DNA from: Rhodosorus marinus CCMP1338
Lineage: Eukaryota > Plantae > Rhodophyta
Length of the DNA stretch: 64,000 nucleotides
Assembly: GCA_029953675.1 (NCBI GenBank)
Contig: JAMWBK010000006.1
Location: 1-64,000 of the forward strand
Direction of reading: 5' to 3'
Below, one piece after another: positions 8,336 through 32,100 of the stretch (its first letter is position 1; every line of letters begins with the position of its first letter). Both the position numbers and the translations under genes were made by a program. Below the pieces are notes generated by a model. That model had not been told where the DNA came from and ran no database searches. It saw only the letters and a program-made list of their open reading frames with translations.

Positions 8336-8339
8336 TGGC

Positions 8340-9220
8340 AGTCTTGCTCAATTATCCCCTCACACTGCCTACTGCCGCTCGCTCCCGCGGCCTGGGAGGC
8401 CATCTATCGCGGGTGTGGTTAACTGCTTTGCCGTCGTAACTGGGACACCGCTTCGACGCCTTCCAGTTCCGCACTGCTGCAAAGATCTACCAGGGTGCCA
8501 CAAGTTCCCTGGCACTCTAATCGGTCAGTCTTTCTGCCACGGATGTGAGAGTTGGATTGACGCGTGTGGCTACCACTTCTTAGGTTCATGCGGACTGTTG
8601 AGAGGTCTTCGTACTAGGCGTAACAACACTCACCTCAAGTACATTCTCAGCGAATCTTTGACTCAGGTAGGGCATACGGTTGAGGTGGAATTGGAACTGC
8701 CCAGAGATCGGTCTCGGACACTGCAGCGCCTCGCTGCATCGCGTATCTCCTCGTCTCCGACACTGCCGCCAGGCGCTCAGCATATGTGGACTCGCGATCA
8801 CATACCCTGTGGCTAGCGCTCATCTCAGCTCTGCCGCCCGTCGCCGATGAGCAGCTGCTTCGGCCTTTCGCCGAGTGAAAGAACGACGGTATGCTGAGAG
8901 TGTGGCCAGTCTGCCTTGCGTGCAGAGGGTCGCTCCCACCGGTTCCAGCCTTTAATCGTGGAAATCTTCTTTTGGTCACGTGGAGAAGTCGAGCTTGGAG
9001 TGGTTGGTGAAAGGTTTCGCTGAGCATCCTACGGAATACTTGGAACTCTTACGCCGTTCAAGTGTCTCTCTGTGGCGATCTTCTAGAAAGCATGCTTGCC
9101 GAGGCGAAAGATCGGCGCCTGGATTTGCACGCTTCCCTGCTCTGGGTTTTAGTTCCCTTTCACGCCTTGCGTAGCGCTTTAGGCTATGCTAATAAAAACC
9201 AGTGGTTTTACTGGTTCTAT
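8340..9220 (+). mobile_element. 5'-truncated tandem copy of the family B 3' region (B3)
   Basis: Nucleotide similarity to 7457-8330 (CGYHFLGSCGLLRG, LKYILSE, EHPTEYLELLRR). Ends with AATAAA and a 7-bp hairpin (9197-9216). Confidence 0.85.
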
Positions 9221-9289: not shown

Positions 9290-9790
9290 GGTGAAGAGCG
9301 ATGCGCAAACCCAGGCGCGATGGGCTCCTCGACACTTATGATTGCCGCGCGTCCGGCACCTATCTCCCTTCTGCCGCTCTCCGCTGGGGGCAGTAGCTTC
9401 CGTCCTTCGCCGCAGCAAGGAACGATGGTACGCCGAGAGCATGGGCAGCCTTTCCCAGGAAGGTTCGGCGGAAGGGCAACAATGGCGGACGCTAATCGAC
9501 CTAGTAACTTGGAATACGCTACTATAATTTTGGCCCTGGCTTCTTAGCTGTATACTAGCCGAGGCTCCTCAATGGCGCCTTGACTTGCAAGCATTTGTCT
9601 TCACTATCTTTCGCGCTACGCCCTGAGTCGCCCGTTGACGTTGTGTTCGTAAAAACAACGCCGAACTACCTGTAGTTTATTCTCCGTTGGAAGTTAAGTA
9701 GTCTTCCATGATTCTAAGAGCAATTGCGAATCCCCCGGCTTCTGCAGAGGAATGAGCGTGTTTATAATTCGGGGACATCCTTGACGCATA
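9290..9790 (+). mobile_element. Short, more diverged 5'-truncated family B 3' fragment with 3' UTR (B4)
   Basis: Matches the family B tail (KERWYAESMGSL, ...ggcgccttgacttgca...). Its 3' end runs into degenerate C-strand telomere-like sequence. Confidence 0.7.
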
Positions 9791-9846
9791 CCCGCTAACC
9801 CCACTCCCGCGACTAACGTACTTACCCTGGAGCGGTGAAGTCACCG

Positions 9847-10223
9847 TAACGTAACCCCAGACTAACGTAACCCCAGACTAACGTAACCCCAGACTAACGT
9901 AACCCCAGACTAACGTAACCCCAGACTAACGTAACCCCAGACTAACGTAACCCCAGACTAACGTAACCCCAGACTAACGTAACCCCAGACTACGTAACCC
10001 CAGACTAACGTAACCCCAGACTAACGTAACCCCAGACTAACGTAACCCCAGACTAACGTAACCCCAGACTAACGTAACCCCAGACTAACGTAACCCCAGA
10101 CTAACGTAACCCCAGACTAACGTAACCCCAGACTAACGTAACCCCAGACTAACGTAACCCCAGACTAACGTAACCCCAGACTAACGTAACCCCAGACTAA
10201 CGTAACCCCAGACTAACGTAACC
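9847..10223. repeat. Tandem array of a 16-bp telomere-like repeat (CCCCAGACTAACGTAA)n, G-strand GGGGTTACGTTAGTCT; ~23.5 units
   Basis: Directly visible near-perfect array with one 1-nt deletion near 9991. It is strand-asymmetric (G4 run on the minus strand) and contains GGGTTA. Degenerate units lie at 9795-9827. Telomeric function is inferred. Confidence 0.95.
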
Positions 10224-10301
10224 GCGTACACTTTACTGAAGAACTCCCTATTGGAGCCCATTAAGAAGCAATAAGGATCCTATTGGTCAGCAAAGAAACC
10301 C

Positions 10302-13300
10302 CTAATGGGTTGTGTGGCTACGTTCTAAGATAGGGACGATGTCATAGTCTGCTTCGTCGACACGACGTGCCTGGGTGGCAAGGATAGCGTTTCCTTTCCA
10401 CAAAGTGCGGTTCAAGATCGCCCGAGCCTCACTTACTTGCGTTGCCCGCTGATCCAGGTGTATAGTCGCTTCCTTGAGGAACTCACTCGCTTGTTGTCCC
10501 ATCTGCCCAAATGTTTCCAGGCAGAAGGGGACGAAGATGTCGTCGTTATGTTCTCCGATACTGTCACGGTATTTGGACTCTTTAAACTTTTCCGCTTTCC
10601 GTGCCGCATACCCGGTCTCCCAAGACGCTTTGTGGAGGTGTGTTCTTTGCAAAGGCGAGGTCACCTTCACATCGATCACGTAGAGCTTGCCTGTTCGTGG
10701 GTGTCGGGCTAGAATGTCAGGCCGAAGCCGACTGCCTTGGTAGTGTCCGGTCGGTTCTATTGTCACTTCTAGTCGCCATTGTCTCAGCACTGTCGCCAGG
10801 GCGTCCCTGACCATGTTATGCCGAATTGTCCAACTGCCGGTAGAGCTGGTGCAGTGGTGAAGGCGTTGAATGCCTGCAGCGTCGTGTGGTTGGGAACATA
10901 TCGTACACGTACCAAGTATTCGTTCCACCCGGCAGGGGTAATCCCAACAGTTGTCGAAGGCTCAGGTTCAGTTCTCCGCTACTTAGGCCGCGTCCGTGTT
11001 TCCTTGGCAAGTCTCGCAGCCAAGTACCCCTCCTGATCCCTTGCAGGAGCGTATTCGCGCACGTGCCGTCTCGCTGATCTCCGCGTTCTCCACCATTTCC
11101 TCGAATGCCCGTCGGTGACTCCAGTTGGAGAGGAGTTTTTGGGTTGAACCGATCAAGGGCCTGTCGGGTGGTGTGTGCGGGTTCTCTGCTTGTTCTTGGC
11201 TCTCCAACGATTGCCATTCTGTTAGGCGGAGTATGGGGGCCGGTGTTCCTCGTGCCAGGCAGCGTTTTGAGTGGAGGCTCGCTTCGATTAGTTGTGCTCC
11301 AAGTTGATCCGTCGAGTGGAGCAGGGGTCGAATGTGATGGTGCTCGGTCAGGTTCGTCGATGTGCAGGCATCGAGTAGCGCTCCTAGGTGGCTAGATCCA
11401 GTCCAATTGAGCTTCAGAGTCTGTCGCCAACTGCTGAAGAAGGCGAGGGGTTGTATTCGTGTTCTCATCGCTAGGCCTGCGCCACCCCATCGGCAAGGGA
11501 GCTGGATCTGCGCTTCGACCACGTCTTTTGCGGGTCCTGTGAGGCCCTGGCCTTCGAGGAGCGAGCCGCACAGTTTGTCGAGTTCCAGGAGCGAGATGCG
11601 ATCGGCTTCGCGTGCGAGATTGGCTCCGTATTGTAGGGCGAGCGTGCGTAGAGCAAAGTCTAGACGCGGTCCCGGTGCGCAGTAGCGGAATAGGCACAGT
11701 TTAATTGGTAGCTCAGTGGTCGGTAGACGGATGACCTCTTGGACGAGTTTTTCATGTTCTCGTTGTAGCTTCCTGTTCGCGTCTTGGACGTAGGTCCGTG
11801 TGCCAATAGGGATGGAATAAAGTTGGATTCCGTCCCGGGTGACATGTACGTCGGGAATTTCCCTGTTGACGAGTCTGGTCGTCGGCAGTTGGAGTCCAAA
11901 AAGCTCGCATTTCGTCCTTTGAAGTTGTGCGCCTATTTCGGGGAGGTGGTGCTCGCTCCAGTGTAGCGCTTCTTTCACGTCCTTCAGAGGGCCAAGTAAG
12001 GTGAGGTCGTCGTGGATTGCGCTAAGGGTGATCCTCGGAAACCGGTCTCGTAGTGCTCGTAGGAGTGGGGAAAGGGCGAGCGCGTGTAAAAGCAGGTCCC
12101 AACGGATCGCCTTGTTGGACTCCAGTCCAGGCTCGGAGCTGGAGCCAGTCATCGACATCGCTGTCTCGCCATCCGAATTGGCGTGGGGCGCTCTCGCCTC
12201 GTGGTCCGTAGCTCATTGTCATAAGCGACTTCAATTCGGGGAAAGCTAGCTCGATGATACGGTTTGCGAGGCGTCGGTCGATTCTGTTGAACGCGTTTGC
12301 GAGATCAAGTTTGAGGAGCACGTCATTCGGGCGCGCTGCGAGGTGGGCTTCCGCGAGGTGGATGGCGTGTTCGCAGCCGCCGCTGACCGAGATGCCGAGT
12401 TGTTCCGGGAGCAGAAAGTCGCGAAGGGGCGTGGCGACAGCGCGAAGTGTCCATTGGGTGACGGCCTTCCGCAGTACCTCAGGAATCCCTAGCGGGCGTA
12501 GGCGAAGAGGGTACCCTTGTCTAGCTTCGGCAGACGTTCGCTTGTCTTTCGCGAGGAGTCGGTTGCTGCGCATGGCTTCGAGAAACACGTCAGGGAAGCT
12601 CTCCGGAGTGGTGGCAAGCTTGCGAAGGAAGCGTACAAGTACCGGTTGCGTTGTCATGGTGAGACTTCGCAGATGTTCGGCTTTGAGTCCACTCGGCCCG
12701 GGGGCTGTGGCGTACGGTAGGTGTTCCAGCGTTGACAGGAGGCTCTCGTCAGAGGCCAAAGTCGGGTCCCATATATTGCGTTGCAGTCCGTTGAGCTTTG
12801 CCTGTAGGGCGTCTTCAAGCTCCGAGGAGAGCGTTGCGGCCTCGTACTCAGGGAAGAGCGTAGTCAGAACGCGCCAGGTGGCAGGAGTCTTCGAGGCAAG
12901 ATCGGTGGCCAGTAGGAGTTGGCTAGACTGGGACATACGTTGAGCTTTGGCGAGTTGTAGGGCTCGTTTCTGTCGGTGGCGGGTCTGAGGCGGCGGAGGT
13001 ACGATACACTTGGTGTCAAGGGTTTTGCTGTGAGCAGTAAGGTGTTCCCACACCGTGGAGAACCTTCCGTCCATAACGGCGAGCATCTGCGCAGAAGGGG
13101 CCAGGTCGCCTGTGTAGCCGAGTGCGAGACTGGGGAGAGCGAAGATGAACAGGCGTGACAGGTTCGGCGCTGACGTATCAAGGGCAAGTTCCAGGGCTTT
13201 CGACATGAGATGGTTCCAGCGTGTTTTCAGGTTATCGGGGACGAATTGGCGAGTAGGCGTCGGAGCCTGAGTCAGCTGCCACCAGCGGTTGCCATTATCG

Positions 13301-13458
13301 GTTACGTTGAGAGTGAAGTCGTGCAGAGACGAGAGCCAGGCGTTCGAGTCGGTCTCGAAGAGTGACTGCGTCGAAGTGGGAGGTCGTTGGCGACGAGCAC
13401 GAGCACGGCGGGATGAGCGAGAGCGGTTCGGAGTATATTCGTCTGAGGAGCTGCTCAT
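10302..13458 (-). CDS. ORF2 of A1: reverse transcriptase + CCHC zinc knuckle + restriction-like endonuclease (~1051 aa after correcting three 1-nt indels)
   Basis: RT motifs: APGPSG, LRPLGIPEVLRK, QLGISVSGGCE, LDLANAFNRIDR, GVQQGDPLGP, IHDD. Knuckle: CTIC...HHC. RLE: RHN...RPD...IDVKV...KESKY. Frame breaks at ~12090, ~11030 and ~10928, each in a homopolymer. Confidence 0.9.
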
Positions 13459-14974
13459 GATTGAGTCGACGAGAGGGAGTCGGGCGTGAGGTCGTCGACG
13501 GCGTTGGCAGGCTTAGGGCGCTTAGTGGGTGGAGCCACTTGTCTCTTGTCTTGGGCCGTCGAAAGTCCTTGCATCGGCTCTGCAGGGGTCACTGGTTGAT
13601 CGCTAGTGGTGGAGGGGTCAGGCTCCGAGTCTAGTGGATCACGGGCTGTCGCGGCAGGCGTCTCAGGCGTGTTGTCCTCCCGAGCGGCTGGGACTTGGGC
13701 AGAATCAGCGCTATGCGTAGTCGCTGCGAGGGGTTCCGCACTCTCCTCTCCAGTGCCGCCGGTTGAGGGTCAGCTACCCGGGTTCGGTCCAGAGAGCGTG
13801 GCTCTCTGCGCTCGGTTGTTGTCGAGTGCTCTGGAAGCTCAGGGTCGGAGAATGGCACGCGCAGGCAACTGTCGGGTGCTCGTTGAGCGTGAGCGTGGAG
13901 GCTGGCCAGGGTGCGATCGAGCTCGGCCCTGACGTGGCCCAGGAGTGCCTCTCGGTTGTTGGGTGGGAGACTCCTGCGATTTGTAACAATCCGCTGGATC
14001 CGTCGGTAGCGGAGCAGGTTGTGGATCAGTGCAGCGCGGGGATAGTCTGCCGGTTGGTGACGGAGCTTTTCCCTCATGCTCAGGTATTCGTGTGACGTTG
14101 GAGAGAGCTTGACAGCTTGGATACGTTGATCAGGAGGCAGGTGTGCTCCTCTGGTGGGTTCGAAGGCCCCTGCGTTGGTAGCGTCGCGGAGTAGTTGGAA
14201 GGCGGTATGATGAGCGATGACGTGTACATGATGATCAAAGTAGTCCAGCTGGAGCAGCGAATTTTTCTGAAGGCCGGCTAGGCGCTCGATATCCCAAGCA
14301 TGATGGGCCTTGCTTCTGGTGGAGTCCCGAGGTCGAGCATTGAGTAGCACAAATGCATCAACGTCCTTCTGGCTCTGGTACTGCAGCCCATGAATGCTCG
14401 CGAAAAACGAGCGATTGGCAGCTGCTGGGGTCTGGTTGGCGCGGACACGTGTCGTCCAGCTCATTGGTTGAGGTTGAGCTCGAGTCCTTGTCCGTGCTTG
14501 CTCATTGGCCGTTGCGAGATCTGGGAATGCATTGGAATCGAGATCACGTGTCTCGGGAGATCGCGGGCGGGCTGCTGCAGTGGCGTAGTTTGCTGGTTCG
14601 TAGACAGGGAGGGGGCGTTGTGCCCTCGGGGCAGCTTTGTGTGGCGTCGTAGTCAGATTGTGAAGGAGTTGAGCCTCGGTGCCATTGGCGTGTGCCTGGG
14701 CTAAGAGACCCATAAACCGCAGCATAAGCCCATTGTAGAGCGGGGTCTTATGCTTGGGCGCGTCGAGATGCAGCTTCAGCGCTCCGCAGCTCAGGTCAAT
14801 AGCCAAGGGAGTAGGTACGTCGTTGTCAAGTGCAGATGCAGTTGTAGGCTCAGAAACAGGTACGGGCAGAGGCTCGGGTCCGTCTGCCCTCAGGCTAACG
14901 GCCGGGAGGTCTTCCATCGTTGCGTCTGTGCAAAAGCCCCCCCCATCCGGAGGCACGGGCTCGAGAGTAGTCAT
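13455..14974 (-). CDS. ORF1 of A1, unknown domain with acidic/Pro-rich tail and NLS-like PPTKRPKP (~506 aa after one 1-nt correction)
   Basis: ATG at 14974, open to ~13770. A single added C in a CCC run joins it to a frame ending TGA at 13457-13455, which overlaps the ORF2 ATG. Homologous segments occur in other copies. Confidence 0.7.
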
Positions 14975-15042
14975 ATCACTCGATAAGCGTTCGTGGAAAG
15001 AATGAAAGTGTAACTTTATCACCACGATAAACTCCAAAGTCC

Positions 15043-15087
15043 AACCCCAGACTAACGTCAACCCCAGACCCCAGACTAACGTAACCC
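15043..15087. repeat. Short telomere-repeat tract (variant unit, 7-bp CCCCAGA duplication, canonical unit) at the A1 5' junction
   Basis: Sequence reads aaccccagactaacgtc aaccccaga ccccagactaacgtaaccc. Confidence 0.92.
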
Positions 15088-15570
15088 GCGCAGTATGCAG
15101 ATTGCTTCCAGAGAATTGAATTCAGATTACATGAAAACCCGAATGACTGGGCTTTGACTTTTAGTTGTTATGAATATTGTACTAGCTCAAATCGTCGTGC
15201 AGGTTCATCGAATCCAGTTTGAAGCTGCCATGAATCCATCCAGTCTCCGTCTCCTGTATATTCGGGCAAATTCGAGGTGAGTGATCTTCGGAAAGGCCCT
15301 GCTTCAGGCTCCATGCAAGGACACTGCTGGCGTCATCTGGTTGCGTCGGTGCTTTGCGGATCAACTTGGTGCTTGGCACACTTCCAATCCTTTCTTAGTT
15401 TAGCCCTTTCGTGGAGCACAGCCATCCATGTCCTTCCGAGGGTGTGTTCCTTTCGTGGAGTGTATTGCTGTAGGTAGCCCTCTAGTAGAGTTCTCGACTC
15501 CGGCCAGGGGGTTCCACTTTGTTATGTAATAAGTTATACTGGACGTCTTGATACTACGTTCTTCTTGGGT

Positions 15571-15663
15571 AGGCAGCTGCCCAGTAAAGTTTACGGTTAC
15601 GTTAGTCTGGGGTTAGACGTAGTGTTGCGCTGCAGTAGGCAGCTGCCCACTAAAGCTTACGGT
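15571..15663 (+). mobile_element. 93-bp insertion: two minimal family A 3'-end fragments separated by one telomere unit, GGT duplicated
   Basis: Absent from the paralogous site at 31761-31779 (cttctggggttgcggcacc). The fragments match the A2 3' UTR at 25586-25640. Confidence 0.92.
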
Positions 15664-17229
15664 TACGGCACCTTCAACACAAGTGAGCGAAGCACGAGCG
15701 ACGCTCAGCCGGTCCCGGTGGAAAGGGAATGCACTGCTTGCCACCCAGGCTCGCCGAATTGACGAAGGGAGCTATGACATCGTTCCTCTAGTAGAACGTG
15801 GCACGCAACCCATTAGGGTTGTTTTTAGCGCGTAGGTAGATTCCTTATTCGCTCTTGATGGGCTCCACTAGGGAGCTCTTCGGTAGAGCATTCACGGTCA
15901 CAGTTAGGTTATTTATTTTGGACGTCGCATCAGGACCAGATCATCGGATCGGAACCAGTTCAATCCGTCGTAGGTCGGCTCTTGGGTAAATTCAAATGGA
16001 CATGATTCATGGTCCATGGATCACTGCTAGACGCGTATATGACAATGTGCTTGAATTTTGGGGAACTATTTCGAGCCCAGCTGAGGCGAAAGCAAGTAGC
16101 TGCGCTGTTGGCTGTGAGCGCATTGGCTCTACCTTTCAGTGGGAATAATCAACAGGGGATTTTTTTTTTTTTTCAACTTCCGGTGGAGCAGACGTGCAAC
16201 TCAAAAGGCCCAGGTGGACCGCTTGGGACAGGAAGAACCCACCCTAGCCCATATCACCCAAAACCGGAGGTTCCCACTAACCGTTGTCGAATCCGCATCC
16301 CACGGAAATGGAACCCAATGGGCTACCGCACAGCAAGAGTTCCGTAGGTTGCCGAGCTCGGCAACCCACACTCTCACCTAGGGACTCGCGCTCAAAAGCT
16401 CGACCGTACGTGTCCGAAGGTTTAACCGAGGACGGATCGGACACGGTTGAGCTCTATTTCGACCCACAATCTCGATCTCGTCCCCTGTACGTGTCTAGAA
16501 TAAGCATGCCAGCACCAAGTCTTGACTAGTCTGGGGTTACGTTTGCTTTTGGCTTCCACGATGCGAACCTGTGGAACGTCAAGAGCGGCGAGCTCTTGGA
16601 CTCGAGCAGAATCTCAGTTTGTGCCAGTGCTGAGTTTACGCTAATCTGGGGTAATTACCTTCACGAGAATTTCTTTTCGCAGACGAGATGCAGAGACCGC
16701 GGGACAAAATAGTCATAGATGAGATATAGCAATCAACAGAATCACCCACTCACTGGCGGGTCGAATACAGAACCCATCTAGTCTCAGTTGAAGATGGCGA
16801 CTGGTGTTTATACCGCTGCTTTGCTGAACTAAGTAAGCGTGAGCTTGGGGGGCCAGGGTGGTGCTCCTGTCACTTAAGCAACCCCTCGTGTCCCCTGAGG
16901 TTAGCCCTTTTTCCTGGAAAGTGCGTCAACGTGAACTCTGGATTGGAACACTCAAATTCTTAAGCCGAAAACTCCGCCAGTGGTCGCTGGCAACCTCAAA
17001 ACTCAGCTCAAGCAAAGACTCAACCCCTCTAACCGGTTCGTCTAGTCCCGGCTGCAAGTGTTCAAACTCCCGAACCGAGCACGTCCTGAAAGGTCAGACA
17101 GCCCACACATCTGGATTTTTGTCTCCGAGAAAAGAGGAATACAAGACGTTACCTGAATTGGAAAACCGGGGCTATTCCATTATGGAGAGTAAGATGTGAA
17201 TGCAGGGCTACGAGTTTTAGGAGGCTACT

Positions 17230-20200
17230 ATGGCATCTCATGCTAACAATCTGAGAGCCTTTTCTGTTCCACGGAATGTACCGCTTGATGACAAGAAGGA
17301 CCCAGCGGACTTGTATATCGTGCATGACTCACCAGCCGATGATCCTGAAAAGATCTCGGAGGAGCTCGTTCTCAATGATACGACGGTGATCTCTGGTCAC
17401 GCAGAGTGGAGGAAGGTTTGGGAATTTGACAGTTGCATCAAAAATGGTTCTTCCGTGAACACCTCGAACTCAGGAGGACATTCGAACCTGGCGGTGAACG
17501 TTAATTCCGGCGGAGTTGCACGAATAGCAAGCACAGTGGTGAGAAGCTTTTTGAGGTTGAATTGTGACTGGGAGAGCGGAAAATATTGCGAACCGTGGGA
17601 AAAGAGGGTAATTCACTGACACCGTCGTTTCTCCTTGCGGTCGCCAATCGTGCAAGTGCAGTCTGAATTGAGCAAGAGGAGACCACGTGGTTTACGCTTT
17701 GTTTTGAAAGAACGGGACGACACTACGTTCTCTGAGCAATTAGCCTTTCCTCTGCAAAAGCCGAGCGTCAACATTGCGTTCGAGGAGTTTCTCCTCAGGC
17801 TTGCTCGAGGTACAGATTGCACTGGCGAAATGAAGTCCAAGCCTTCGGACGCTTGAATTTGGTTAGGTAATGCTCTTCAAAGCTTCTTCGTTAATCGTCC
17901 AATTTGCCTGTGTTCCCTCTTCTGTGGCAGGTCCATGTAAGGCCGTTTCAAAAGATGTTCCATTGGGGCCGGCCATATCCAGATCCGTAGGGAAGACCTT
18001 AGAAATGATGATGGAAAAGAACATACCGCCGCAGGCGGCTGTCTGGTTTCTTAAGGTGGCCATACTGAATGAATTGCCCAAAAAGACGAGGTTGAGATCT
18101 CACAAGAGGACTTGGGGAATCCCCCTCTTCAACGACCGGAGCTCTAAGCTACCCATCCTTTGTTTCTCATATCATGCCAGACCTGACAAACCGCCGCCGT
18201 TTGCGAAATGGCTCTGGTTTAAGCTGGCATCGGAGCACTTCCGGGCCCAGCTAGAGTCATACCGCGCTCTGAGCGTATCACCGCAAACGTCCGCATCAAA
18301 GTCTAACCAGTGGGAGTACTTTCTGAGCATTTTGCGCTTCCAGGCTGATGAAGGTAAGGACTCCGTTGCTAAAAAAAGTTGCTTTTACTACGATCTCATT
18401 TGCAAATTATTCTGCATGGAGTAGAGGGACGGTGACGTCCTCATCTTGCTTTCTGAACTTCGGTTCTGCAATAGGCCTCCTCGATGAGTTGACCCTAGTG
18501 GGCCGGCTTCTGTTCGTAGAGCTTCGAAAGGAACTCCAGACTGACTATGGGGAAGACGAACGCCCTAGTTGTGCATTAGTTTTTCAGAAGCAACTTCTTG
18601 ATATGCTTCTCGGTGCGATGCAGGAATTCGAACCTGAAATTTTGGCGTCCCGGGAATCTACGGTGGCCCTCAATCAACTTTTGAAAACAGCAATGTCTCC
18701 CACTTCGGCTCGTTTCATCCCTTTCCGAAAACGCTTGTTACAGGTCTCCAGAACCACTAACAAACGTCTTCTCGAAGCAGATTGCCTAACAAACTCGCAG
18801 GTATGCCAAAACAGAGAATCGAGATGGTCGGACTGTATCTTATTTTGCATCGTCGAGGAGTGATTCCCTGGTGTCACAAATGTGTGCTTTCCGACCTCTT
18901 ACCTTTTGTTCTTTCCTCCAAAGTTGTTGCTAGGAGACGATCAGAATCCAGGAACACCTAGATCTCGTGGACGGAATAGAGGAATGGTTTACGACCGTGA
19001 TGCTTTTCACAAGAAGATGCTGCTCCTTGGCTGCCTAACGAAAATGGCTTGGACTGGCAACTTTTCCGAAGCTGTTGAGCTCTGCCAATCTGCTTTCAAC
19101 ACTACTACTGCTGCCGTGCGCTTTCTTGTTAAGTGGACCCTCTGTGGTACAACATCCACATGCCCTCTCGCCGGGCTAACGTACGTACTGAATCGCAACT
19201 ACCCGAAAGACCGAGAGTCCTGGTTTTCGAGAATTCTTCGTTCCTGGAGGAGCTACTACGTTGAGAGTTTTAACAACCTCGTCCACGAATATCCCTTCCT
19301 GGCTGGTATTCTGACATTTGCCTCCGTATCTTGGACACAGGGCTGGCTCTGTGATTAGACTATTGGAAAAGGCTAAGCGAACGAGACGTCAACGGGCACA
19401 AGGTAGATTCATGTTCCAGAGACCAATTACTTCTGAAGTAGAAGTATGCCTGTCAAAGGGGTTGGCGGAATGTGACGCCGCAGTAGAATTTCTCCTGCAC
19501 TTGAGCAGCGTTGAATGCATTTCAATTAGTAACTATTTGAAGTACATCAGAGCGGGCCTTGCGAAGGCGCCAAAGTTACATGGAATTGGAGAGGACCTGG
19601 TGAGGCGATTTCCGGAGACTATGGATCGCAACGCAACGCTTCGAAGGCAAATACTCAAGAGCTTAGGGGTTGATAACATGGAGGTGGGTGGGGGAAGGAA
19701 GAGTGTTTCTGGGAGTCCTCTATGCTTCAATTCATAGGATCGAGATCCGATTCGCAACGTGCACGCTGAGCAAGAGTCTTCTGTCCTGATGTGTAGGCAA
19801 CTGTGACCTACGATCCAAGCGTCATCGAGCGGGTGCTTTCAAATGATCTAGTTTCTGCGAGGGCCGCGGGGAAGGAGCTGAGGAAGAGACATGGCCTTTC
19901 ATCGAGACTGACCCATTGTGACATCGCTGTCAAGGTATAGAAGTAATTGTGAACAGCCCTGGTTGGAACAGATTTTCCCACCAAACCCGAACAGTCTCTG
20001 AAGATCATGATTGCTGCTCATCATTTGCGGAACACTTGCAGTGCGGAGAGGATGTGCGCGTTTCCGTCTTGGTGTCCTTTCTTCTGGAGGCGGGAGCCTA
20101 CCGTACAGCTTCATCGTTTCTTGTGGACATGCTGAAACACGTTGAAGAACGCGGCGACGCTATAGATAAAGCTGATATCATTAGTTCTCTCTCCGGCATG

Positions 20201-21931
20201 GGCCTACTCTTCAGTGCAAGAGGAGATCTTGATTTGGTCATGGACCTTGCAATGAACTGGTCAAAAAGTGAACCCCAGGCTGTGCAGAGGTAATGCATCG
20301 TCTAGGAACCACATCAAATATGCTCCTTACGACAATCTCCACTATCGTTGTTTCCTTGTGCTGATTGTTCACATTCTGTCACGGACAGACTTTTGGGTGC
20401 ACTCGCCATCTCGTTCAAGGACACGTGAGCATCCTGGAAAAACTACGTTCGAAACGGTATTCTACGAGGTTTGTCGTCCTCCATGGCTCGCGCGTTACGA
20501 GGTGAACATGTCAACATAAGCTCGTCCGCGGTATTAGAGCAGTACCTTGATGCGGGCATAGACATCTCTAGCGCAATCCAAGAACTTGGCGATTCGCGAA
20601 GAACTCTTGAGGAATTTATTATACCGCTTGCCAAGGTAGGTGCAGAGATTGCAATGGAGAGAGCTGATTTCCACGTTCCCTCATTTGTTTGAATGGAAAC
20701 TACTGGTTCTAACTGAGTGGCTGTGACCGACTGGAACGCGTCCCAATGGACTAGCTCCGAAAGTCTGTGTGCGTTCCTAGCGAGATTCTTGCGTTCTTTG
20801 CAAGCGGATGCTCTCCCTCGACTGCGCTCGAACTACTGAACGTTATCATGCAGTATGGTCTCGAAGCCGCGGAAAAAGTTGTACAGCATCCGTTCCTACG
20901 AAGTGCGGTTCTATCCGCAGGTCTTCCAGCCGCCCTATCGCAGCACGCACGTCCCGGAGGAAATCCTGAAGCTATTCATCAGAAACCAGAGGAATCCCAG
21001 CAGGCAACTATCAGCTGTCGACGTGGTTAAAAACGCGAACATATTCAACGGCAACCTCTTTGCAATGTGGCTGCAGCTCGAACTGCAGAGAACAAGTTTG
21101 ACGACTTCGGAGGTAATGCGAGACAACTGGCACACGTGGAAGCGTTGTACTGACACGGTTTTCTGCGTTGCAGGTGGACGCTCTGGCTGCAGAAATCATG
21201 GCGCTTCTCGTAGAAGACAAGAGCATAGAGCCTTTGATTTACGACGTCCTGATCAAACCCGAGTCCTTGCGACTACGTGAAAGATTCTTGTCCATCCTGT
21301 TGACAAAGTTCAGCTCTGGATTTGAAGGCTTAATGGTCTCATCATCGGTACGCAGCCGCAAAATGACGTCGACATTTTTCAATGGCGATGTCAGTGAGCG
21401 CTAGCGGATGGCATTGGTGATTTTCTTGCTCAACCGAAACTCCTAAATTCTGACTATGGCACCCAGGAGACTTTGAACCGGTCAACGGAAAGGCTCGCTG
21501 AAGTAGACTACATATGTTTCAAGTTGCTGAAATATTTGAGTTTTCATTCAGAAGTACACGTTGACTTTGAGCTTGTACAGGAGGACATGATAAAACAGTT
21601 GAAGCAGATCAAGGAGACCCTGGGGAACGTCTTGCCGGAGAAGCTTATGCACCACAAGTATGTTGGCAAGGCAGTGTTGAGGCGGATCGAACTCCTTCGA
21701 GGGGCTGGGTTCGATGGCCTCGTGGCGAACTCCACGGAACTCTTGCTACAGACGTTGGAGGTGGTTGTTCCGGCACTGGAGGAGTCTGAAGTTGAAGACA
21801 TTCTCAGCGCAATCCAGGGATCGGAAAATCTGACGACGGAGGGAAAGGAACGTGATGAGACGGGATTGAAAAGAAGGGTACGTTCTGTCATGAAGGTTGT
21901 GAATTTTGTTCAAACAACATGTACTTCGTAA
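17230..21931 (+). pseudogene. MED12: MED12 (Mediator kinase-module subunit) pseudogene, distal copy
   Basis: Paralog of 33348-38052. It has a nonsense change (TGA at 20426-20428 vs TGC), a 4-bp insertion near 20948 and a 1-bp deletion near 21420. Confidence 0.75.
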
Positions 21932-22770
21932 CCGCAGAGAGAACGCTATTGAGCGAGAGCCTACGATACTGCTCGGCGGACCAGTATCCTCGTTATTCTA
22001 TTGACAAATGGCTTCTTTTTCGTCGCCGGCCGTGGCTCTTAATGTAATTGCTAATCATCTTTGTCCCAGGTTGTCACTTCGAATGTACATTTTTGGCTAT
22101 CCGCCAGGCAGAGGTTGATTCTTTGCTCTTCTTTTGCCGTGGCACGGGGAATGAACGGTGCCTACCGTCGAAGTATTGTCGCCTTTGCACCTTCCGAGGA
22201 GGCCCCAGCCAAACGGCGTTTATTGGACAATTGGAATCTGCTAGAAGGCCAGGGCCTGGATGCAACCATGAGCACGCCAACGTTCGGAATCCAGATAAAA
22301 GGGGACTCAAAGCCAGTGCGCTTCTTGAAGAGGTATTCCTCATCGTATGCCTCGCTTTCTAAATAAGCACGGTGTGGAAATAGGAAAATAAGAGCACTTG
22401 CGACCCGGACGGCTAAACTACTATCAGAGTGACCACGTACCTGTCCAGGGATTTGTTGATGTTGCGTCCTCGAGTTAAATTGGTCCGGAGTTAGGTTCAG
22501 ATACTGCTGGTCGTGCGCTGGTGCCCGATGGAGAAAGCCAAACTGACCCGGGGTTGCCCTTCGAGAAGAGGTCCCAAGTTTCTGTTTGACGGCTGAAGAC
22601 TTATCATGAAGCTGATTATATACATATACGGAACTGGGCCTTAGAGGACCAGCAAAACGTTTGACAGTGGTGATCGTGCCGTGTGCAAAGGATACTGAGC
22701 ATTTTGTCTATACAGTCGAATTTTACGGAGATTGACTAGGATCGTGATCGCCGACATTGAAAATCTGCCT

Positions 22771-25640
22771 TTCAGATGCAGCTCGAAGCCTACAGGCCAC
22801 CGAAATGGCACCTTTTACCGCGGCTACGTGGAGACAACTACAAGCGCTCTTTCCCAACCCGGCAGAAGGTGACATACCAGACGAGATTGCACACGCCCTG
22901 CAATCTTTGCTCGCTCTGAATACCGAAACACTAAAGCGGCGGTGGGATTCAAGAAAAACTGCCGACGAGGGCCTCATGTCGATCGTGGCACGTCTTCCTC
23001 AGGGCAAGAGCCCAGGTCCTAGCGGTATCCGAGCGGAACACCTCCAAGGTGCAACTCAACAGACGCAAGTGGCGTTGATTCGTGTATTGCGACAACTGGC
23101 GACCGCTCCTGAGAAATTTTCCCCGGCTCTGACCCGCGCCCTTCGCAGTAGTCGACTCCTGCCGTTCGCGAAGCCTAAGAAGGGTTCAGTGCCGCAGGAA
23201 CATCCCGGAGTTCGCCCTATCGGAGTACCAGAAGTTTTGCGCAAGGTAGCAACGCAATGGACTCTTCACGCGGTTATGGACAGGGTGCGTGAGCTGCTGG
23301 TGCCCTTACAACTGGGTATTGGAGTAAGTGGCGGGTGCGAACGCTCACTTCACTTGATCCAGGCCCATTTGTCATGCGAACCCGATTCGGTGGTCCTTCG
23401 GCTAGACCTAGAGAATGCCTTTAATCGCATCGACCGACGCCTTGCCAAGCAACTGGTGGACGAACACTTGCCGGAGCTTGCACCAGTGTATCGACTTGGC
23501 TATGGAAGCGACAACGCGGACTCACCGACGCTCTGTGGCTGGCGATCTTCCCCGGGACAGAACGAAACCGACACCTCTCGCCTGACTCTCCAAGCAACTA
23601 CAGGAGTCCAACAGGGAGATCCACTGGGGCCGGTGCTACATGCACTATCCCTGGCGCCCTTTCTAAGAGCGTTGCGAGCCAAGTTCCCCAACGAAACGAT
23701 TGTTGCTATCCACGACGATATCACGATTGTCGGGCCGCTACAAGCCTTGAAGGCATCCCGGGCATGGGGAAAAACTGTGCTCCCCTCTCTTGGAGCACGC
23801 CTGCAACTCGGCAAGTGCACTGTGTACGGGCGAACACTGACTACCACGCGAGTGGTCAATCATGAGATTCCTGGAGTGCAAGTGACCAGAGACGGAGTCA
23901 CCATCCACTCGATACCGATAGGCAGCCGAGAATATATCGAACAGGAGTGCCGGGGGCTGCAAAATAAGCATGAGAAACTCTTTGAGCAAATTGCCAAGCT
24001 CCCACAACCGGAGCTTACGACGCAAATTGCCCTCTTCAGGTTCTGTGCAGAAAGGCGACTAGACTATGTGCTACGATGCCTCGCATACGAGTTTGGAAGA
24101 AATCTGGCACGCGAGGCCGACGTGATGACCAGATATCATCTGGAAATTCTATTCGGAGGCCTCGCTACGACAGCTGTAGAGGACGATGAGTACGCAGAGC
24201 TGATCTCGGACCAAATCGCTCTGCCCTGCCGCTGGGGAGGTTTGGGTTTCGCTACTCGAAAGCGCGTCCAACCCATCGCGTTTTACTCGTCATGGAGAAA
24301 CACCTTCCGGAACAATGAAGATGAATGGCCATACCTGACTGAACTGGACTGGACTTTACTAGCATAGGCTGAAGCGCTACGCAAGGCGTGAAGATGAACC
24401 AATAACTAGGGAGGGAAGCATGCAACCCCAGGCGCCGATGGCGCGCCTCGGAAAGCATGTCACTGAACTAGAGCGGGAGGTTACGGCAGAACGCTCACCA
24501 GACACATACGAGCCGACGGAGCAACGATGGTCGACTGCACAGCTGGCAGAACAGATCTGTGCATCGTCGCGAGCAATACAACGGAGGCTCGGACCAGAAG
24601 CCCCGCCGCGGATCTTGGCACTGACAACCCTGCAACAACCGCGAGAAACATCTCTTCGAAGCGCCCCGGGCGAGACTGCAGCTTGGAATAATGGTTCAAT
24701 ACAACAAACCCTCTCTCGAGAGGCACACCATTGTGCATTCCAAAAGCTGGTCACCAACCCACGAATCTCCCCTGAAAACCGAGCTCGAATACGGTCTGCC
24801 GCGGGATCCGAGTCGGGAGTCTGGCTGCGTGAAATACCAACGCTGACACCGAAAAAATTGAGTGCGGTTGAGATGCAGGTAAACGTTCGACAACTGCTGG
24901 GTCTGCCAATTCCGGGATTGCGCACCACCGAGAAGTGCACTAGTTGCCGGAGTAAACACGGAAGGACTGGGGTACAACGGTTTCATCACTGCCCAACATC
25001 AACTGGACTGTGGCAACGTCGGCATGACGAAATCTGCAGAGAGCTGACACGGTGGCTAAGGCGATGGAACTTCATGGACGTAGAGCAAGAACCCGAGGGG
25101 TACTTCGAGAACTACGGACTGCGACCTGATATCGTTGCTAGGCATCCGAGGACCAAACAAAGGTATGCGCTGGATGTGACGGTGGTGTCACCATTACAGG
25201 GAAAATATTTGCGGCTGAGCCAAGATGATAGCGGATACGCGGCGAGAGCTGCGGAGAAGTGGAAAATCGCTGACTACAAGGAAGCGATGGTGATCGAGAA
25301 ACCGGATGACAAGCTCATCCCGATAGCGATAGAGACGTTTGGGCGTACGGGGCAAATGGCACAAGAGTTCCTCCGCGACAGCTGCAAACACCTGCTGCAC
25401 AGGAGTGAGGAGCTGAGAGACGTGAGATCCCAGATAAACCGGCAACTATGGCGAGGTAACGCGGAGATAGCATTAGGCGCTTTGCGCGTGGACCAGCTGG
25501 AGAACCCGCTGGTGCCTGTTTTTTCTTTTGAACGTAGCATGAGACCCCGGTAGCGGGGTTCCAGAAAGTTTTTCCCTAGATAGGATTAGACGTAGTGTTG
25601 CGCTGCAGTAGGCAGCTGCCCAGTAAAGCTTACGGTTACG
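22771..25640 (+). mobile_element. 5'-truncated family A element (A2): RT-CCHC-RLE with one frameshift, complete 3' end
   Basis: SPGPSG, VRPIGVPEVLRK, LDLENAFNRIDR, GVQQGDPLGP, IHDD, CTSC...HHC, RHDE...RPD...LDVTV. Frameshift at ~24362 and stop at 25553. The 3' UTR ends GGCAGCTGCCCAGTAAAGCTTACGGTTACG. Confidence 0.93.
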
Positions 25641-25649
25641 GTAACGGGT

Positions 25650-26200
25650 TTAGGGGGCGAGGTGGTTGCCTACGGCCTGTCGCGGGAGATCATGCGGAGA
25701 TGGTGCAGAATTCGTAGTTGCGGCTCCACTTTCCCACATACCCGGTTTCCGGGACAACTCCGTAAGGCGTCCGGTGACGCCTTGCAGCTCTTGCGAGCTG
25801 TTGACCCGCGAGTACAGTTGAAAAACTGCTTTGTAGAAGCCTGTAACTTCGGACGCAGCGATGCCCAGGTCCTGGTAGCATCTGTCGAAGCTCCGCAGTT
25901 GATGCAAGAATGTGGCTGCCGGGTCGGTTGCGGCTGCAGACTCGGTCCATCTTCTTGCTTGAACATCGCCTGCTTGTGGTTCCGTCGGTGTCTCCTGCAC
26001 GTCGCCATCAGACTGGTGCTGGTGCCTTTGCAAACTTCCCGGGTGCCCGAGGGGTCCGGGCCCTGAACGACAAGAGGTTCGGGGTACGGCCCGCGTACCT
26101 CCCTCACAATCATCTTCGGACTCTCTTACGAACTTTCCTTTTGTCTTCCTTACGAACTTTTCCTTTTGTCTTCCCCAAACGCCTACGACCTAGATTAGCA
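25650..26200 (-). mobile_element. Probable 5' end / ORF1 N-terminal fragment of a family A-like element
   Basis: ATG at 26113 (VREVRGPYPEPLVV, resembling A1 VSLRADGPEPLPV), followed by a helical ORF after one frameshift. A 24-25-bp tandem duplication lies upstream (26135-26183). Similarity is weak. Confidence 0.45.
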
Positions 26201-26228
26201 ATAGAAGTAGTCGTTAGTCTAGGGTTAA

Positions 26229-26904
26229 GAAAAAAGAGGGACCAGTGGATTCTCCAACGGTCCACGCGCAAAGCGCCTAGGGCTATCTCGGCATTACCTC
26301 GCCAAAGTTGCCTGTTGATCTGCTATCTTACATCGCTCAGCTCCTCGCTCCTGTGCAATAGGTGTTTGCAGCTGTCCCGCAGAAACTCCTGTGCCATCTG
26401 TCCCGTCCGCCCAAATGTTTCTACCGCAATTGGGATGAACTTATCATCCGGGTGTTCTATCGTCATCGCCTCCTTGTAGTGCGCTTTCTTCCAGCTCTCT
26501 GCACATCTTGCTGCATATCCGCTCTCCGCCTCACTACATTCAGATACTTCCCTTTGAGAGGAGCCACAACCGTCACGTCCAGTGCATACCGTTGAAATGT
26601 CCTCGGATGCGCAGCAATGATGTCTGGCCTTAGCCCGCAGTTTTCAAAGTACTTCTCCGGCTCCTGCTCGATGTCCAGAAAGTTCCACCTGTTCAACCAC
26701 CTTGCGATCTCCGTGCATATCTCGTCATGCATACGTTGCCACAGGCCAGTAAGCGTTTGAGGAATTCACTGTTGGATCCCCAGTGAATACCTCAAACGCT
26801 TGTCGGTGGCACTCTCGAGAGAGAGTTTTTTGTATTGGACCGTCAAACGTTTGGTTTCCTTCTGCGTCCTCAGCTGTGCCTTGGGCTGACTCCTCAATCA
26901 ACTG
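26229..26904 (-). mobile_element. 5'-truncated family A 3' fragment (A3), RLE domain
   Basis: HDEICTEIARWLNRWNFLDIEQEPEKYFENCGLRPDIIAAHPRTFQRYALDVTVV closely parallels A2. The 5' junction abuts a telomere seed at 26905-26921. Confidence 0.9.
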
Positions 26905-26921
26905 CCAGACTAACGTACCCC

Positions 26922-27433
26922 TCGGCAAGCATGCTACTCGAATATCGCCACAGAGAGACACTTAAACGCTGCAAAAGTTCCAAGTACTCAACGGGATGCT
27001 CAGTAAAACATAACCGAAACCACTCCAAACCCGACTTCTCCACGTCACTAGAGCTTCCCACAATGAAAGGCTGGAACTGGTGGGAGCGACCCTCAGCGCG
27101 AGGCAGACTGCCCATACTCTCAGCACACCGTCGTTCCTTCACGCGGGGAAGGGCCGAAGCCGCTGCTCCCCGGCGGCGGGCGGCAGCCGTGAGATGGGCG
27201 CTTGCCACAGGGCATGTGATCGCGAGGTCAACATATGCGCAGCGTCTGGCGGCAGCATCGGAGACGAGGAAATCTGCAATACAGCGGGGCGGTGCCCTAT
27301 CCGAGACTGATCTGGGGTAGTTCCGATAACTGCGCACTTTTTTCTGCCATAAAATGCGGTTCGACTGACCTCTTACCGATGTTAGGTGTGTTTTACGATC
27401 ATGAAGATGAGCAGTTGCATTTCGCAGAAACCA
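26922..27433 (-). mobile_element. Family B RLE fragment (B5), truncated at both ends
   Basis: APPRCIADFLVSDAAARRCAYVDLAITCPV...EHPVEYLELLQRLSVSLWRY. Bounded by telomere seeds on both sides. Confidence 0.88.
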
Positions 27434-27452
27434 CAGACTAACGCAACCCCAG

Positions 27453-28300
27453 GGCTGCCGGAGTCATCTCCGTGTCATGGCCTTTGCCTTCCGCTGTCAC
27501 GCGTGCGCGTTTTTGCTGGGGAGGCTCCGGAAGGTTGTGCGGGAGCTCGGCGTGTGGATTTTCCTCTTCGGCATCCTCCTGTGGTAGTTGAGACGTAGCG
27601 CTGGAGTCACCCGAAGCGTCGAGGGTCCCGCGGGCTACCTGTGAGTCTCCGTGAGTCTCCGTGAGGAGTCGAGGCTTCTGGGGCTGCGTTTGTAGCGGCT
27701 GCAGTCGCAAGGGGTTCCACGCTCTCCCCGGCTACCGCTGGTGGATGTTGTAGGGCTCTTAACGCTGGTAGACGCTCTTCCAGTGTTTCATGGATGGCTG
27801 CGAGAGTAGAGAACGACAGATTCCTCTTTCCGAGCCTCGCGCGAATCCTGATGATCTGTTGTATGGCCCGGTGCAGCGTCTGGGCTGGGATATCCTCTTG
27901 GGCGATCCTTTGCCTTTAGTTGTAGCCCAACAGGTTGCCAGCCTCCAGTCCCTGTCCTGTGTGGAAAATCGCTTGCCGGTCAGGATGTCTCGGTGTGAAC
28001 GATCCAAAGATCCCTGTTCTGAAAACGCCTCTGGCGATAGCGCTCTGCACAATCGGGATTGCATACGGATGGCAGAGCAGGCTTGCGTGTGATGAGATGA
28101 AGTCCGCATGCGCGATGTGAGAGGCTGGGATTCCCCGCGCGGCGCATAGGACGGTGGTGAAGTCCGAAGGTGCCACATTATCCTGCCTTTGGGGGCGGAC
28201 GTTTCGAAGGGCGGCAAGGATCGGTGTGGTCTCTGGTCCCCAGATAGCTCCCTCCACCGTAGCGTGCAGCTGTCGCAGCGCTGCCTGCTGAGTCTGCCAG
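27453..28300 (-). mobile_element. Family A-like ORF1 fragment (C-terminal two thirds) with a nonsense codon
   Basis: ADFISSHASLLCHPYAIPIVQSAIARGVF matches A1 LDYFDHHVHVIAHHTAFQLLRDATNAGAF. GESVEPLATAAA matches GEESAEPLAATT, and there is an NLS-like PPQQKRARV. Bounded by telomere seeds. Confidence 0.72.
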
Positions 28301-28311
28301 CCCGAGACTAA

Positions 28312-28363
28312 CGTAAGCCGTAAAGGCTATTGGGGCAGCTGCCCAATAAAGGATACAGTTACG
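28312..28363. repeat. Imperfect inverted repeat made of two oppositely oriented family A 3' termini sharing the palindrome GGGCAGCTGCCC
   Basis: The plus strand reads gcagctgcccAATAAAggatacagttacg. The minus strand reads gcagctgccccaatagcctttacggcttacg-ttagtct. Confidence 0.75.
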
Positions 28364-28640
28364 ATAGGCTCGGGCAGCAGGATAGGGAGAGAGAGGGTTC
28401 TCGTGGCGGGATATATCTCAACGCTCTGTCTTCGTAACTGAACTGATGTGTGCGTTGAATCAGCTGATTTTAATCAGTCTCTTGGCTGACAGATGAATCT
28501 GATGTGTTAGTCCTTTTCCAGACTATATACTGAAGGAACGGAAGGCTCGTAACTTTCAAACGTCCCTCCCCCGTGGTCACTCTAGCCAGGGCTAGAGTGA
28601 CGCAGTTCATTCGCTTCTGAGAACTGATGATTTGGCCCAC

Positions 28641-29454
28641 TCAATACAGACCACATTTCATGAGGCACTCCTTCTGAATCTCCCGGGACACTGCCGCAGC
28701 CCGAAGCTTGTCGACTTTGTTGAGGGGTACATCGAAGATGACGCTCAAGAGATTGTCAGGAAAGCTCAGAATGCTATCCGGATAGTTAAGGGCTCCTGGG
28801 TCCTCGCTACTCAAACCCGCGAAGAACTGCGCCTCCTCGCAGCTGTCATTGATCTGGAAGTGCGGGAGTCCCTGAGGAAAGATAGTACCCTGTCCTGACT
28901 TCAACTTGTTGACAATCGTCCGAGTCTGGAACTCTACAAGTGTTACAATTACCAGCGCAATGACACGATTTGGCTTCAGTACTAAACAAGCATGCCCTGA
29001 TAAGCAACATTGACGGCTATAACCTACCCTCAGTGAAGCCAACCTTAAAATTTTTGCCCTTGATCAAATATAAGAACTCCGTTGCTCGCGGGTGGGAGTG
29101 CGGGTTATTCACTGTAAATTGAAGGAGAATTGGGGAGCAATTGTAAGCAAGGTTTCTCACAAATGCGACAGGAAAAAAATGAACTTGGTTGTGGGTTTTG
29201 CTACCTCCGCAAGGCTCAAGCGTGACGAGCGCAGCACCAATCCCAAGATTGCGTAGTGCTGGGAACGTGTTCAGAAAAGCTGGAATGAGAGTTGTTCCGA
29301 TTCCGTTGCTTAGCATTGGGCCCTTTCTGAAGTCGAAGACGAAATCCTTCCTGTCAAACTCCTGCCTCTCCTCCAGAGCTGTTTGTGTCGCGGCGAACAC
29401 TGCTAGCACAGATCCAAAAAGGATTAAAACACTGCACGGGCATGTTACTTTCAT
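28641..29454 (-). CDS. Secreted germin/spherulin-like cupin protein (2 introns inferred)
   Basis: Signal-peptide-like N-terminus. Germin box PHSHPRATEFLYLIKG and motif 2 GQGTIFPQGLPHFQIN. Confidence 0.9.
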
Positions 29455-31730: not shown

Positions 31731-32100
31731 AAGTTATACTGGACGTCTTGATTCTACGTTCTTCTGGGGTTGCGGCACCTTCAACACAAGTGAGCGAAGC
31801 ACGAGCGACGCTCAGCCGGTCCCGGTGGAAAGGGAATGCAATGCCTCCACCCAGGCTCGCCGAATTGACGAAGGGAGCTATGAGATCGTTCCTCTAATAG
31901 AACGTGGCACACATCCCATTAGGGTTTTTTTAGCGCGTAGGTAGATTCCTTATTCGCTCTTGATGGGCTCCACTAGGGAGCTCTTCGGTAGAGCATTCAC
32001 GGTTACAGTTAGGTTATTTATATTGGACGTCGCATCAGTACCAGATCATCGGATCGGAACCAGTTCAATCCGTCGTAAGTAGGCTCTTGGGTAAATTCAA

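Follow-up and report, generated by a model that had tools for sequence, protein, structure and literature searches.

Retrotransposons with a restriction-like endonuclease joined at one phase to a 16-nt, probably telomeric, repeat in the red alga Rhodosorus marinus

Introduction

Long interspersed nuclear elements (LINEs) that invade telomeres are known from insects, fungi, Giardia, Chlorella and the anole, and the elements considered here would add an archaeplastid lineage to that list. In the silkworm, SART and TRAS insert in mutually opposite orientations (PMC10088271), and the 3' end of the RNA governs the exact start of reverse transcription (PMC7265360). The MoTeR and FoTeR elements of fungi lie with the 5' end facing the chromosome terminus, their sense strand being the C-strand (PMC12857005). 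In this study we examine the first 64,000 nt of contig JAMWBK010000006.1 of the red alga Rhodosorus marinus CCMP1338 (assembly GCA_029953675.1, forward strand; the whole of this stretch is referred to below as the window), which contains copies of a group of retrotransposons without long terminal repeats (non-LTR), here called family A, next to tracts of a 16-nt repeat, GGGGTTACGTTAGTCT (the 16-mer).

The telomeres of rhodophytes have been described as unusual and as uncharacterised (PMC3622300, PMC7046594), and standard probes and telomeric repeat amplification protocol (TRAP) assays have failed in red algae (PMC3622300). The genome paper for R. marinus CCMP1338 reports telomeres on 12 of 17 contigs, the sequence of which is not printed, and tabulates LINE/CRE repeats that are not discussed there (PMC10250338). 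The existence of such repeats in Rhodosorus is therefore already recorded; what sets the present ones apart among LINEs of (probable) telomere repeats is the combination of a restriction-like endonuclease (RLE), G-strand sense, a 16-nt target and a red algal host. The 16-mer was not found in the literature searched, and neither was any earlier description of elements of this kind, in agreement with an earlier note on this DNA that was made from its letters and knew of none in this lineage.

Results

Family A ends at one phase of a 16-nt repeat

All six family A 3' ends in the window (10226, 15594, 15660, 15896, 25633 and 28320) are followed by the 16-mer beginning at its base 3. On the minus strand ..AGTAAAGTGTAC-GC is followed by GGTTACGTTAGTCT(n) at 10226/10223, and ..ATAGCCTTTAC by GGCTTACGTTAGTCTCGGG at 28320/28319. 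On the plus strand ..AGTAAAGTTTAC leads into GGTTACGTTAGTCTGGGGTTAG at 15594/15595, ..CTAAAGCTTAC into GGTTACGG at 15660/15661, and ..AGTAAAGCTTAC into GGTTACGGTA at 25633/25634. These are the five termini that the earlier note had placed at a common phase, and each reads as it was described there (..TAC, then GGTTACG); the sixth junction, at 15896, is degenerate and has a duplicate near 32000. Together the six ends give the consensus ..A(G/A)TA(A/G)AG-N-(T/C)(T/A)C. The sequence at 15617-15660 is 96.6% identical to that at 25583-25641, both being followed by GGTTACGG, and the junctions at 15660 and 25633 may represent one event. By our own arithmetic, counting four independent events in the window and one in another strain, the chance of a common phase is about (1/16)^4.

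The 5' junctions are more variable, as would be expected of target-primed reverse transcription (TPRT). They had been said to fall after TCTGG(GG), which is true of five of the seven, located between TCTGG and TCTGGGGTTA, and not of the remaining two (15668 and 9847), which lie elsewhere. The apparently full-length element, A1, has the 16-mer on both of its sides, with 2.9 units at the proximal (5') flank and 23.6 units at the distal (3') flank.

The distal flank of A1 is the tandem array at 9847-10223, with the G-rich strand as the minus strand. It has a period of 16, 23.6 copies and 99% matches in Tandem Repeats Finder, includes one 15-nt variant unit near 9987, and is the sole strong array in the window; all other tracts are of 2.9 units or less. 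If up to two mismatches are allowed, the window has 28 occurrences of GGGGTTACGTTAGTCT, whereas shuffled sequences lead one to expect 0.

A second Rhodosorus strain (Joint Genome Institute sample 3300016967) proved informative. Three transcript-like contigs from it, L008-L010, carry A2-like copies (A2 being the other long element of the window) with 72-80% DNA identity to those of the window, in which an end ..AATAAAGCTTAC (..TAC) is followed by CGTTACGTTAGTCTGGGGTTA and then by a second, 5'-truncated copy. The spacer between elements in L008 is 21 nt (16+5), compared with 22 nt in the window, and the first copy in L008 is itself preceded by a degenerate tract that has no A-type 3' end before it. 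The 16-mer is thus identical in the two strains and the 3' phase is kept, with 20 nt of repeat exactly conserved despite 20-28% divergence in the DNA of the elements. Conservation of the repeat, the phase and the 21-nt spacer is difficult to account for unless insertion took place repeatedly at one repeat position.

Organisation of the family A elements

As judged from sequence, family A consists of non-LTR retrotransposons of the RLE type in at least two lineages, A1 and A2, and since their proteins are only about 44% identical these lineages must be old. Element A1 (10224-15041, minus strand) is about 4.8 kb and apparently full length, comprising a 5' untranslated region (UTR; 15041-14975), a first open reading frame (ORF1; 14974-13631, 447 aa), a second (ORF2; 13458-10302, about 1050 aa) with reverse transcriptase (RT), zinc knuckle and RLE, and a 3'UTR (10301-10226) which ends in AGTAAAGTGTAC, then GC (10225-10224). 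ORF2 of A1 contains at least three frameshifts (about 12100, 11010 and 10900). Element A2 (22770-25633, plus strand) is 5'-truncated, joins a break at 22769 in the first copy of a duplicated host segment, and has separate frames for the RT (22757-24367) and for the zinc knuckle and RLE (24420-25553), its 3' end being AGTAAAGCTTAC.

The predicted order of RT, zinc knuckle (CCHC) and RLE (PD-(D/E)xK) in ORF2, proposed in the earlier note, is confirmed by Pfam, by motif spacing and by the modelled fold. Pfam RVT_1 is matched with E = 4.5e-9 in A2 and 3.1e-5 in A1, and the best PDB sequence matches of the RT are L1 ORF2p and R2. The C-terminus of ORF2 reads C-x2-C-x3-H-x9-H-C, x9, RHN/D, x19, E, x10, RPD, x14, D-V-K/T, in which the knuckle residues C, C, H, H, C and the RLE motif residues are invariant across A1, A2 and the related copy L001, the spacing of the knuckle being atypical. 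An AlphaFold model of this region has a core pLDDT (predicted local distance difference test) of 80-92, and in a Foldseek comparison of the model with the PDB the best seven matches, with E from 2.6e-5 to 3e-3, are without exception proteins of R2 retrotransposons; a profile search likewise aligns the family A C-terminus with the R2 endonuclease. The K-to-T change that gives D-V-T in A2 was considered as a sign of decay and rejected, as D-V-T is found also in R2 and in distant relatives.

ORF1 has no match in Pfam or the PDB. There is a single Cys in the first 250 aa of A1 ORF2 and there are three scattered Cys in ORF1, so that family A is without a cysteine-rich N-terminal region, and with no A-run at any 3' junction it is also without a poly(A) tail. 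In the 3'UTR, only a 5-bp terminal hairpin is common to all lineages; a compensatory change in three of its five pairs is weakly suggestive of conservation of the structure. In addition, a 3'UTR hairpin holds the TAG stop codon of ORF2 in its loop both in A1 (10296-10312, AACCCATTAGGGGTT) and in A2 (25546-25561, ACCCCGGTAGCGGGGT), with stems of different sequence, an arrangement that is suggestive and no more.

Nature of the 16-nt repeat

Several features of the 16-mer indicate that it is quite probably the telomere repeat of Rhodosorus. Its strands are asymmetric in G and C, its core is TTAG..GGGG, it occurs as exact 17-nt tracts in host DNA away from elements (16527 and 42253), and 20 nt of it are exactly conserved between strains. 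Furthermore, at four junctions unrelated sequence is capped by the G-strand repeat at other phases: the start of a non-coding piece, X (15089/15090), a family B fragment (26921/26922), an ORF1 fragment (27452/27453) and L008 (150/151). The polarity of these junctions and their varied phases are what would be expected of telomerase healing a break. Three of the four capping tracts start on the first G of the GGGG run or no more than one base away from it.

The two exact tracts in host DNA may be described further. One, at 16527-16543 (plus strand), is inside a duplicated host-like segment with no adjoining element, and has a degenerate copy at about 32647-32661. The other, at 42253-42270 (plus strand), is intergenic, the gene about 0.7 kb away being LepA/GUF1-like (40406-41528, minus strand); it reads CGTTAGTCTGGGGTTAC, an exact 17-nt match to the 16-mer, and resembles a short, telomere-like interstitial tract next to which 2 nt have been deleted. 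The possibility that this tract is the template of a telomerase RNA was dismissed, the match being only 16+1 nt, the flanking ACCCC specifying a 14-nt unit, and a T-run terminator being absent. An Rfam scan of the window found no RNA family.

Proposed mechanism and alternative explanations

On balance we favour the view that family A integrates by TPRT at one fixed position of GGGGTTACGTTAGTCT, and that the 16-mer is most likely made by telomerase. The sense strand of the elements runs on into the G-rich strand, so that first-strand synthesis has to be primed from a 3'-OH in the C-rich strand. Provided that the nick lies at the junction, the first cut would be made in the C-rich strand at 5'-..TAACGTAACC^CCAGAC..-3'. 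Synthesis of cDNA would be primed at this nick, probably aided by read-through repeat at the 3' end of the RNA and by the small conserved 3'UTR hairpin, and the second strand would be broken a few bases downstream, which would account for the clustering of 5' junctions between TCTGG and TCTGGGGTTA. As priming requires a nick in the C-strand, the elements would invade duplex repeat and would not extend the natural 3' end of the chromosome. The window would then be a rearranged subtelomere, in which telomere tracts have been repeatedly invaded and internalised.

A wider form of this proposal, which we put forward tentatively, is that GGGGTTACGTTAGTCT is a telomerase-templated telomere and that chromosome ends in Rhodosorus are mosaics of the repeat and a separately evolved, G-strand-sense RLE lineage which nicks the C-strand. 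To our knowledge, the combination of an RLE endonuclease and G-strand-sense orientation has not been described for telomeric elements. If true, this would be a telomere with a long unit beyond the budding yeasts, and in a phylum in which telomeres have proved hard to analyse.

A number of observations weigh against these proposals. There is no intact copy of family A in the window. No terminal array was seen, and scans with an exact 32-mer dimer (metagenome, genome and viral contigs) and with the conserved 20-mer (genome contigs) returned no matches. The array itself is internal, at least 9.8 kb inside a window that starts with ordinary, non-repeat sequence, and every long tract seen joins an element 3' end. 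Tract orientation flips twice (15089 and 26227), and the history is thus not that of a simple terminal array. Repeats labelled LINE/CRE amount to 2.82 Mb in this genome, which seems much for chromosome ends alone, and they need not all be telomeric. In one sublineage, L001/L004/L005 and L011, copies end ..AATAAAGCTCAC AGTCTCC and are followed by two different non-repeat flanks. The site specificity put forward in the earlier note is supported by the copies with the fixed phase, with repeat on both sides, with tracts between tandem copies and with counterparts in the second strain, and is not seen in this sublineage. Lastly, the fixed 3' phase could equally come from read-through transcripts, which would anneal by the repeat at the RNA 3' end, as from the nick, and L008 shows that read-through transcripts exist. 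Whether the phase is set by the nick or by annealing, the outcome is site-specific TPRT.

Some of these observations would also suit an origin of the 16-mer as a 3' tail carried or extended by the elements, through slippage or template re-use by the RT as in the short-repeat tails of other LINEs, or as a targeted satellite, the locus being an ordinary internal island of transposable elements. The sole long array is internal and attached to the A1 3' end, the other tracts are no longer than 2.9 units, the scans of public collections provide no independent terminal evidence, and a fixed phase is automatic if the tail belongs to the element. We nevertheless consider this origin unlikely. It does not explain the repeat on the 5' side of A1, where no upstream element in the same orientation could have supplied a tail, or the tract before the first copy in L008, which no A-type 3' end precedes. 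Nor would it readily produce isolated exact 17-nt tracts in host DNA, the capping of unrelated fragments (family B, ORF1 and X) at other phases, or a repeat that is G/C-asymmetric with a TTAG..GGGG core.

Rearrangement must also be taken into account. A 7.7-kb duplication in the window includes element fragments, the junctions at 15660 and 25633 look like a single event, and the flips in orientation point to rearrangement. These would be consistent with elements that are not site-specific, blocks of element plus repeat having been spread by recombination, gene conversion or segmental duplication and the junction copied with them. Such copying is very improbable as the explanation of the phase, for the junction is common to lineages that are 44% identical in protein and have different 3'UTR sequences, it is present also in a different strain, and no two fragments are truncated at the same point, which is what separate insertions would give. 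Subtelomeres rich in repeats are also easily misassembled, and the flips at 15089 and 26227 might prompt the suggestion that the internal array and the head-to-head layout are artefacts, a chimeric join of chromosome-end reads. We find this hard to credit, as the junctions are specific and each is different, and short in-phase tracts between fragments are found also in the independent transcript contigs. Site-specific TPRT into a repeat that is probably telomeric remains our preferred interpretation.

History of the locus and other features

The window contains a direct segmental duplication of 7.7 kb (15090-22769 and 31290-38893, 93-95% identical), which contains remnants of elements and a host-like gene of several exons that matches Med12 weakly. 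Copy 1 stops at 22769, exactly where the 5'-truncated A2 begins, and copy 2 continues into unique DNA. The G-rich strand switches from minus to plus and back to minus along the window; the block 15090-26227 has the opposite orientation to the sequence on either side, with a head-to-head meeting of two distal sides near 26227. The overall impression is of sequences from chromosome ends that underwent breakage, capping, invasion and rearrangement.

On the distal side of the array lies a decayed, 5'-truncated RLE C-terminal fragment (..VTVTSPLQGKY..; 9400-9846, minus strand), the 3' limit of which is uncertain, and the 9.8 kb to the left of the array hold more decayed retroelements. The proximal flank of A1 is a tract of about 2.9 degenerate units (15042-15088, minus strand, in the orientation of A1), whose far side abuts the start of X (15090) with the polarity expected for repeat added to a broken end. 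X (15090-15594, plus strand) is a 505-nt non-coding piece, duplicated at 31290-31770, which ends in the family A terminal hairpin and AGTAAAGTTTAC. It is without coding similarity to A1 or A2, yet the repeat starts in phase after its 3' end, and it may be a non-autonomous partner riding on the family A machinery or a long 3'UTR variant. A 22-nt tract (15595-15616, plus strand; GGTTACGTTAGTCTGGGGTTAG, 16 + 5-6 nt) separates X from a 44-nt A2-type 3' terminal fragment (15617-15660, plus strand), which is followed by GGTTACGG (15661-15668). Next comes an A1-like 3' fragment with the RLE C-terminus and 3'UTR (15669-15896, plus strand; 74% aa identity to A1), duplicated at 31776-32000 and followed by one degenerate repeat unit (15897-15912). 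The region 15090-15912 thus contains three 5'-truncated pieces head to tail, with spacers of 22 nt and 8 nt.

Directly after the A2 3' end is the repeat remnant GGTTACGGTA (25634-25643, plus strand). An A2-like copy truncated at both ends (26228-26903, minus strand) has its 5' junction after ..GTTAGTCTGG, and its 3' break abuts a tract of opposite orientation (26211-26227, plus strand); twin priming as the source of this inverted copy was rejected, its identity to A2 being only 77%. The 18-nt tract at its 5' junction (26904-26921, minus strand) caps a 3'-truncated family B-like fragment (26922-27324), a junction resembling a healed break, and a 24-nt tract (27429-27452, minus strand) caps a 3'-truncated fragment with ORF1. 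This last is the 5' part of a family A-type element (27453-28300, minus strand), in which an ORF1-like stretch at about 27916-28110 has 44% identity to ORF1 of L001. A 19-nt tract, GGCTTACGTTAGTCTCGGG (28301-28319, minus strand), follows a short family A-type 3' terminal fragment (..GGGCAGCTGCCCCAATAGCCTTTAC; 28320-28400, minus strand), whose upstream side adjoins host DNA. A host gene of the cupin (germin-like) type (28641-29454, minus strand; Pfam Cupin_1, E = 1.2e-7) is directly proximal to this innermost fragment and its tract.

Family B is a separate element with RT and RLE, about 30% identical to family A, and its 3' end is ..GCTAGTAAAGTCCAG. Copies are present at 893-2694 (minus strand) and 5698-9203 (plus strand), the RLE and 3' region of the family being tandemly duplicated (7456-8323 and 8339-9203). 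A 113-nt family B 3' end lies antisense in A2 at 24349-24461 with an 11-bp target duplication, ACTGAACTnGA, the empty site being seen in a relative. Family B therefore inserts outside the 16-mer repeat, with target duplications.

The earlier note took the host to be probably a red alga, and this is borne out by a host ORF at 62182-63975 (minus strand) that is 87-89% identical to two R. marinus proteins in the MMETSP transcripts. By this evidence the DNA belongs to a Rhodosorus (Stylonematophyceae) that differs from the strains sampled in MMETSP. The closest matches to the family A RT are an MMETSP transcript (84%) and R. marinus NDN08_004844 (75%, A2-like). Distant RT relatives L002 and L003 (27-37% identity) have no telomere repeat adjoining in the expected place; an interstitial TAAACCC in L003, about 4 kb away, is not informative. 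Further removed are elements with an RLE from a variety of protists, and an RLE profile search of metagenome contigs gave no further element loci. A 2.1-kb contig binned as 'Cyanobacteria bacterium J06638_22' (GCA_039819145.1, JBCBSL010000655.1) encodes a Rhodosorus-type element protein with 49% identity to A2, and is probably algal contamination of the bin.

Discussion

For the largely uncharacterised telomeres of red algae, the 16-mer provides a concrete candidate, which could be used as a probe, from which a TRAP primer could be designed, and whose template could be sought in a telomerase RNA. A LINE with an RLE that reads a 16-nt target would, moreover, be a natural case of R2-like proteins gaining new, long specificities, which is of current interest for site-specific gene insertion. 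As repeats labelled LINE/CRE form the chief class of repeats in the R. marinus genome (9%), the choice of target by these elements shapes that genome.

Family A was described in the earlier note as CRE-like, for which the support is an automated annotation: in R. marinus CCMP1338 the source-data RepeatMasker table of the genome paper gives the label LINE/CRE to 24 RepeatModeler families, to which A1 and A2 may belong and which together make up 2.82 Mb (9.04% of the genome). None of 75 RT matches and 13 RLE matches is trypanosomatid or fungal. Members of the CRE clade generally have a DNA-binding zinc-finger motif at the N-terminus and end in a poly(A) tail, neither of which is present in family A. 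Its knuckle, C-x2-C-x3-H-x9-H-C, also departs from the consensus C-x1-3-C-x7-8-H-x3-4-C of SLACS, CRE and MoTeR (PMC12857005). The elements CRE1/CRE2, SLACS and CZAR of trypanosomatid spliced-leader genes, and Cnl1 of Cryptococcus, are site-specific RLE elements like family A and have RHD/N, E, R/KPD and D/E at compatible spacings, but differ from it in knuckle spacing, poly(A) tail, cysteine-rich N-terminus and target, the comparison being one of described features.

R2, found in arthropods, birds and turtles, has the same order of RT, zinc knuckle and RLE and is likewise without a poly(A) tail, and the R2 protein recognises the structure of the 3'UTR. The R2 RLE is the best structural match of the family A C-terminal domain, and its D-V-T aligns with that of A2. 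In other respects R2 is unlike family A, with its 28S rDNA target, N-terminal zinc-finger and Myb domains and single ORF, and the similarity between the two RTs is marginal in sequence (E = 0.04).

SART1 and TRAS1 of Bombyx mori (R1 clade) enter duplex repeat at a single, exact position of the telomere unit, much as is proposed for family A, and the sense strand of SART1 runs with the G-strand, as in family A. They differ in having an N-terminal endonuclease of the apurinic/apyrimidinic (APE) type, poly(A) tails and a 5-nt target unit, and belong to an unrelated LINE clade. MoTeR1 and MoTeR2 of Magnaporthe (Pyricularia) oryzae and the FoTeRs of Fusarium oxysporum share with family A an RT with C-terminal zinc knuckle and RLE, as well as insertion in telomere repeats, tandem arrays with short repeat spacers and asymmetric junctions (PMC12857005). 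They have a single ORF of about 1150 aa where family A has ORF1 and ORF2, a knuckle of C-x2-C-x6-H-x3-C where family A has C-x2-C-x3-H-x9-H-C, and a TTAGGG target in place of the 16-nt unit. Their sense strand is the C-strand, that of family A the G-strand, and this opposite orientation argues for independent solutions. Family A is probably, then, an algal counterpart of the telomere-targeting elements of the silkworm and the rice-blast fungus, with a 16-mer that is probably the telomere as its target.

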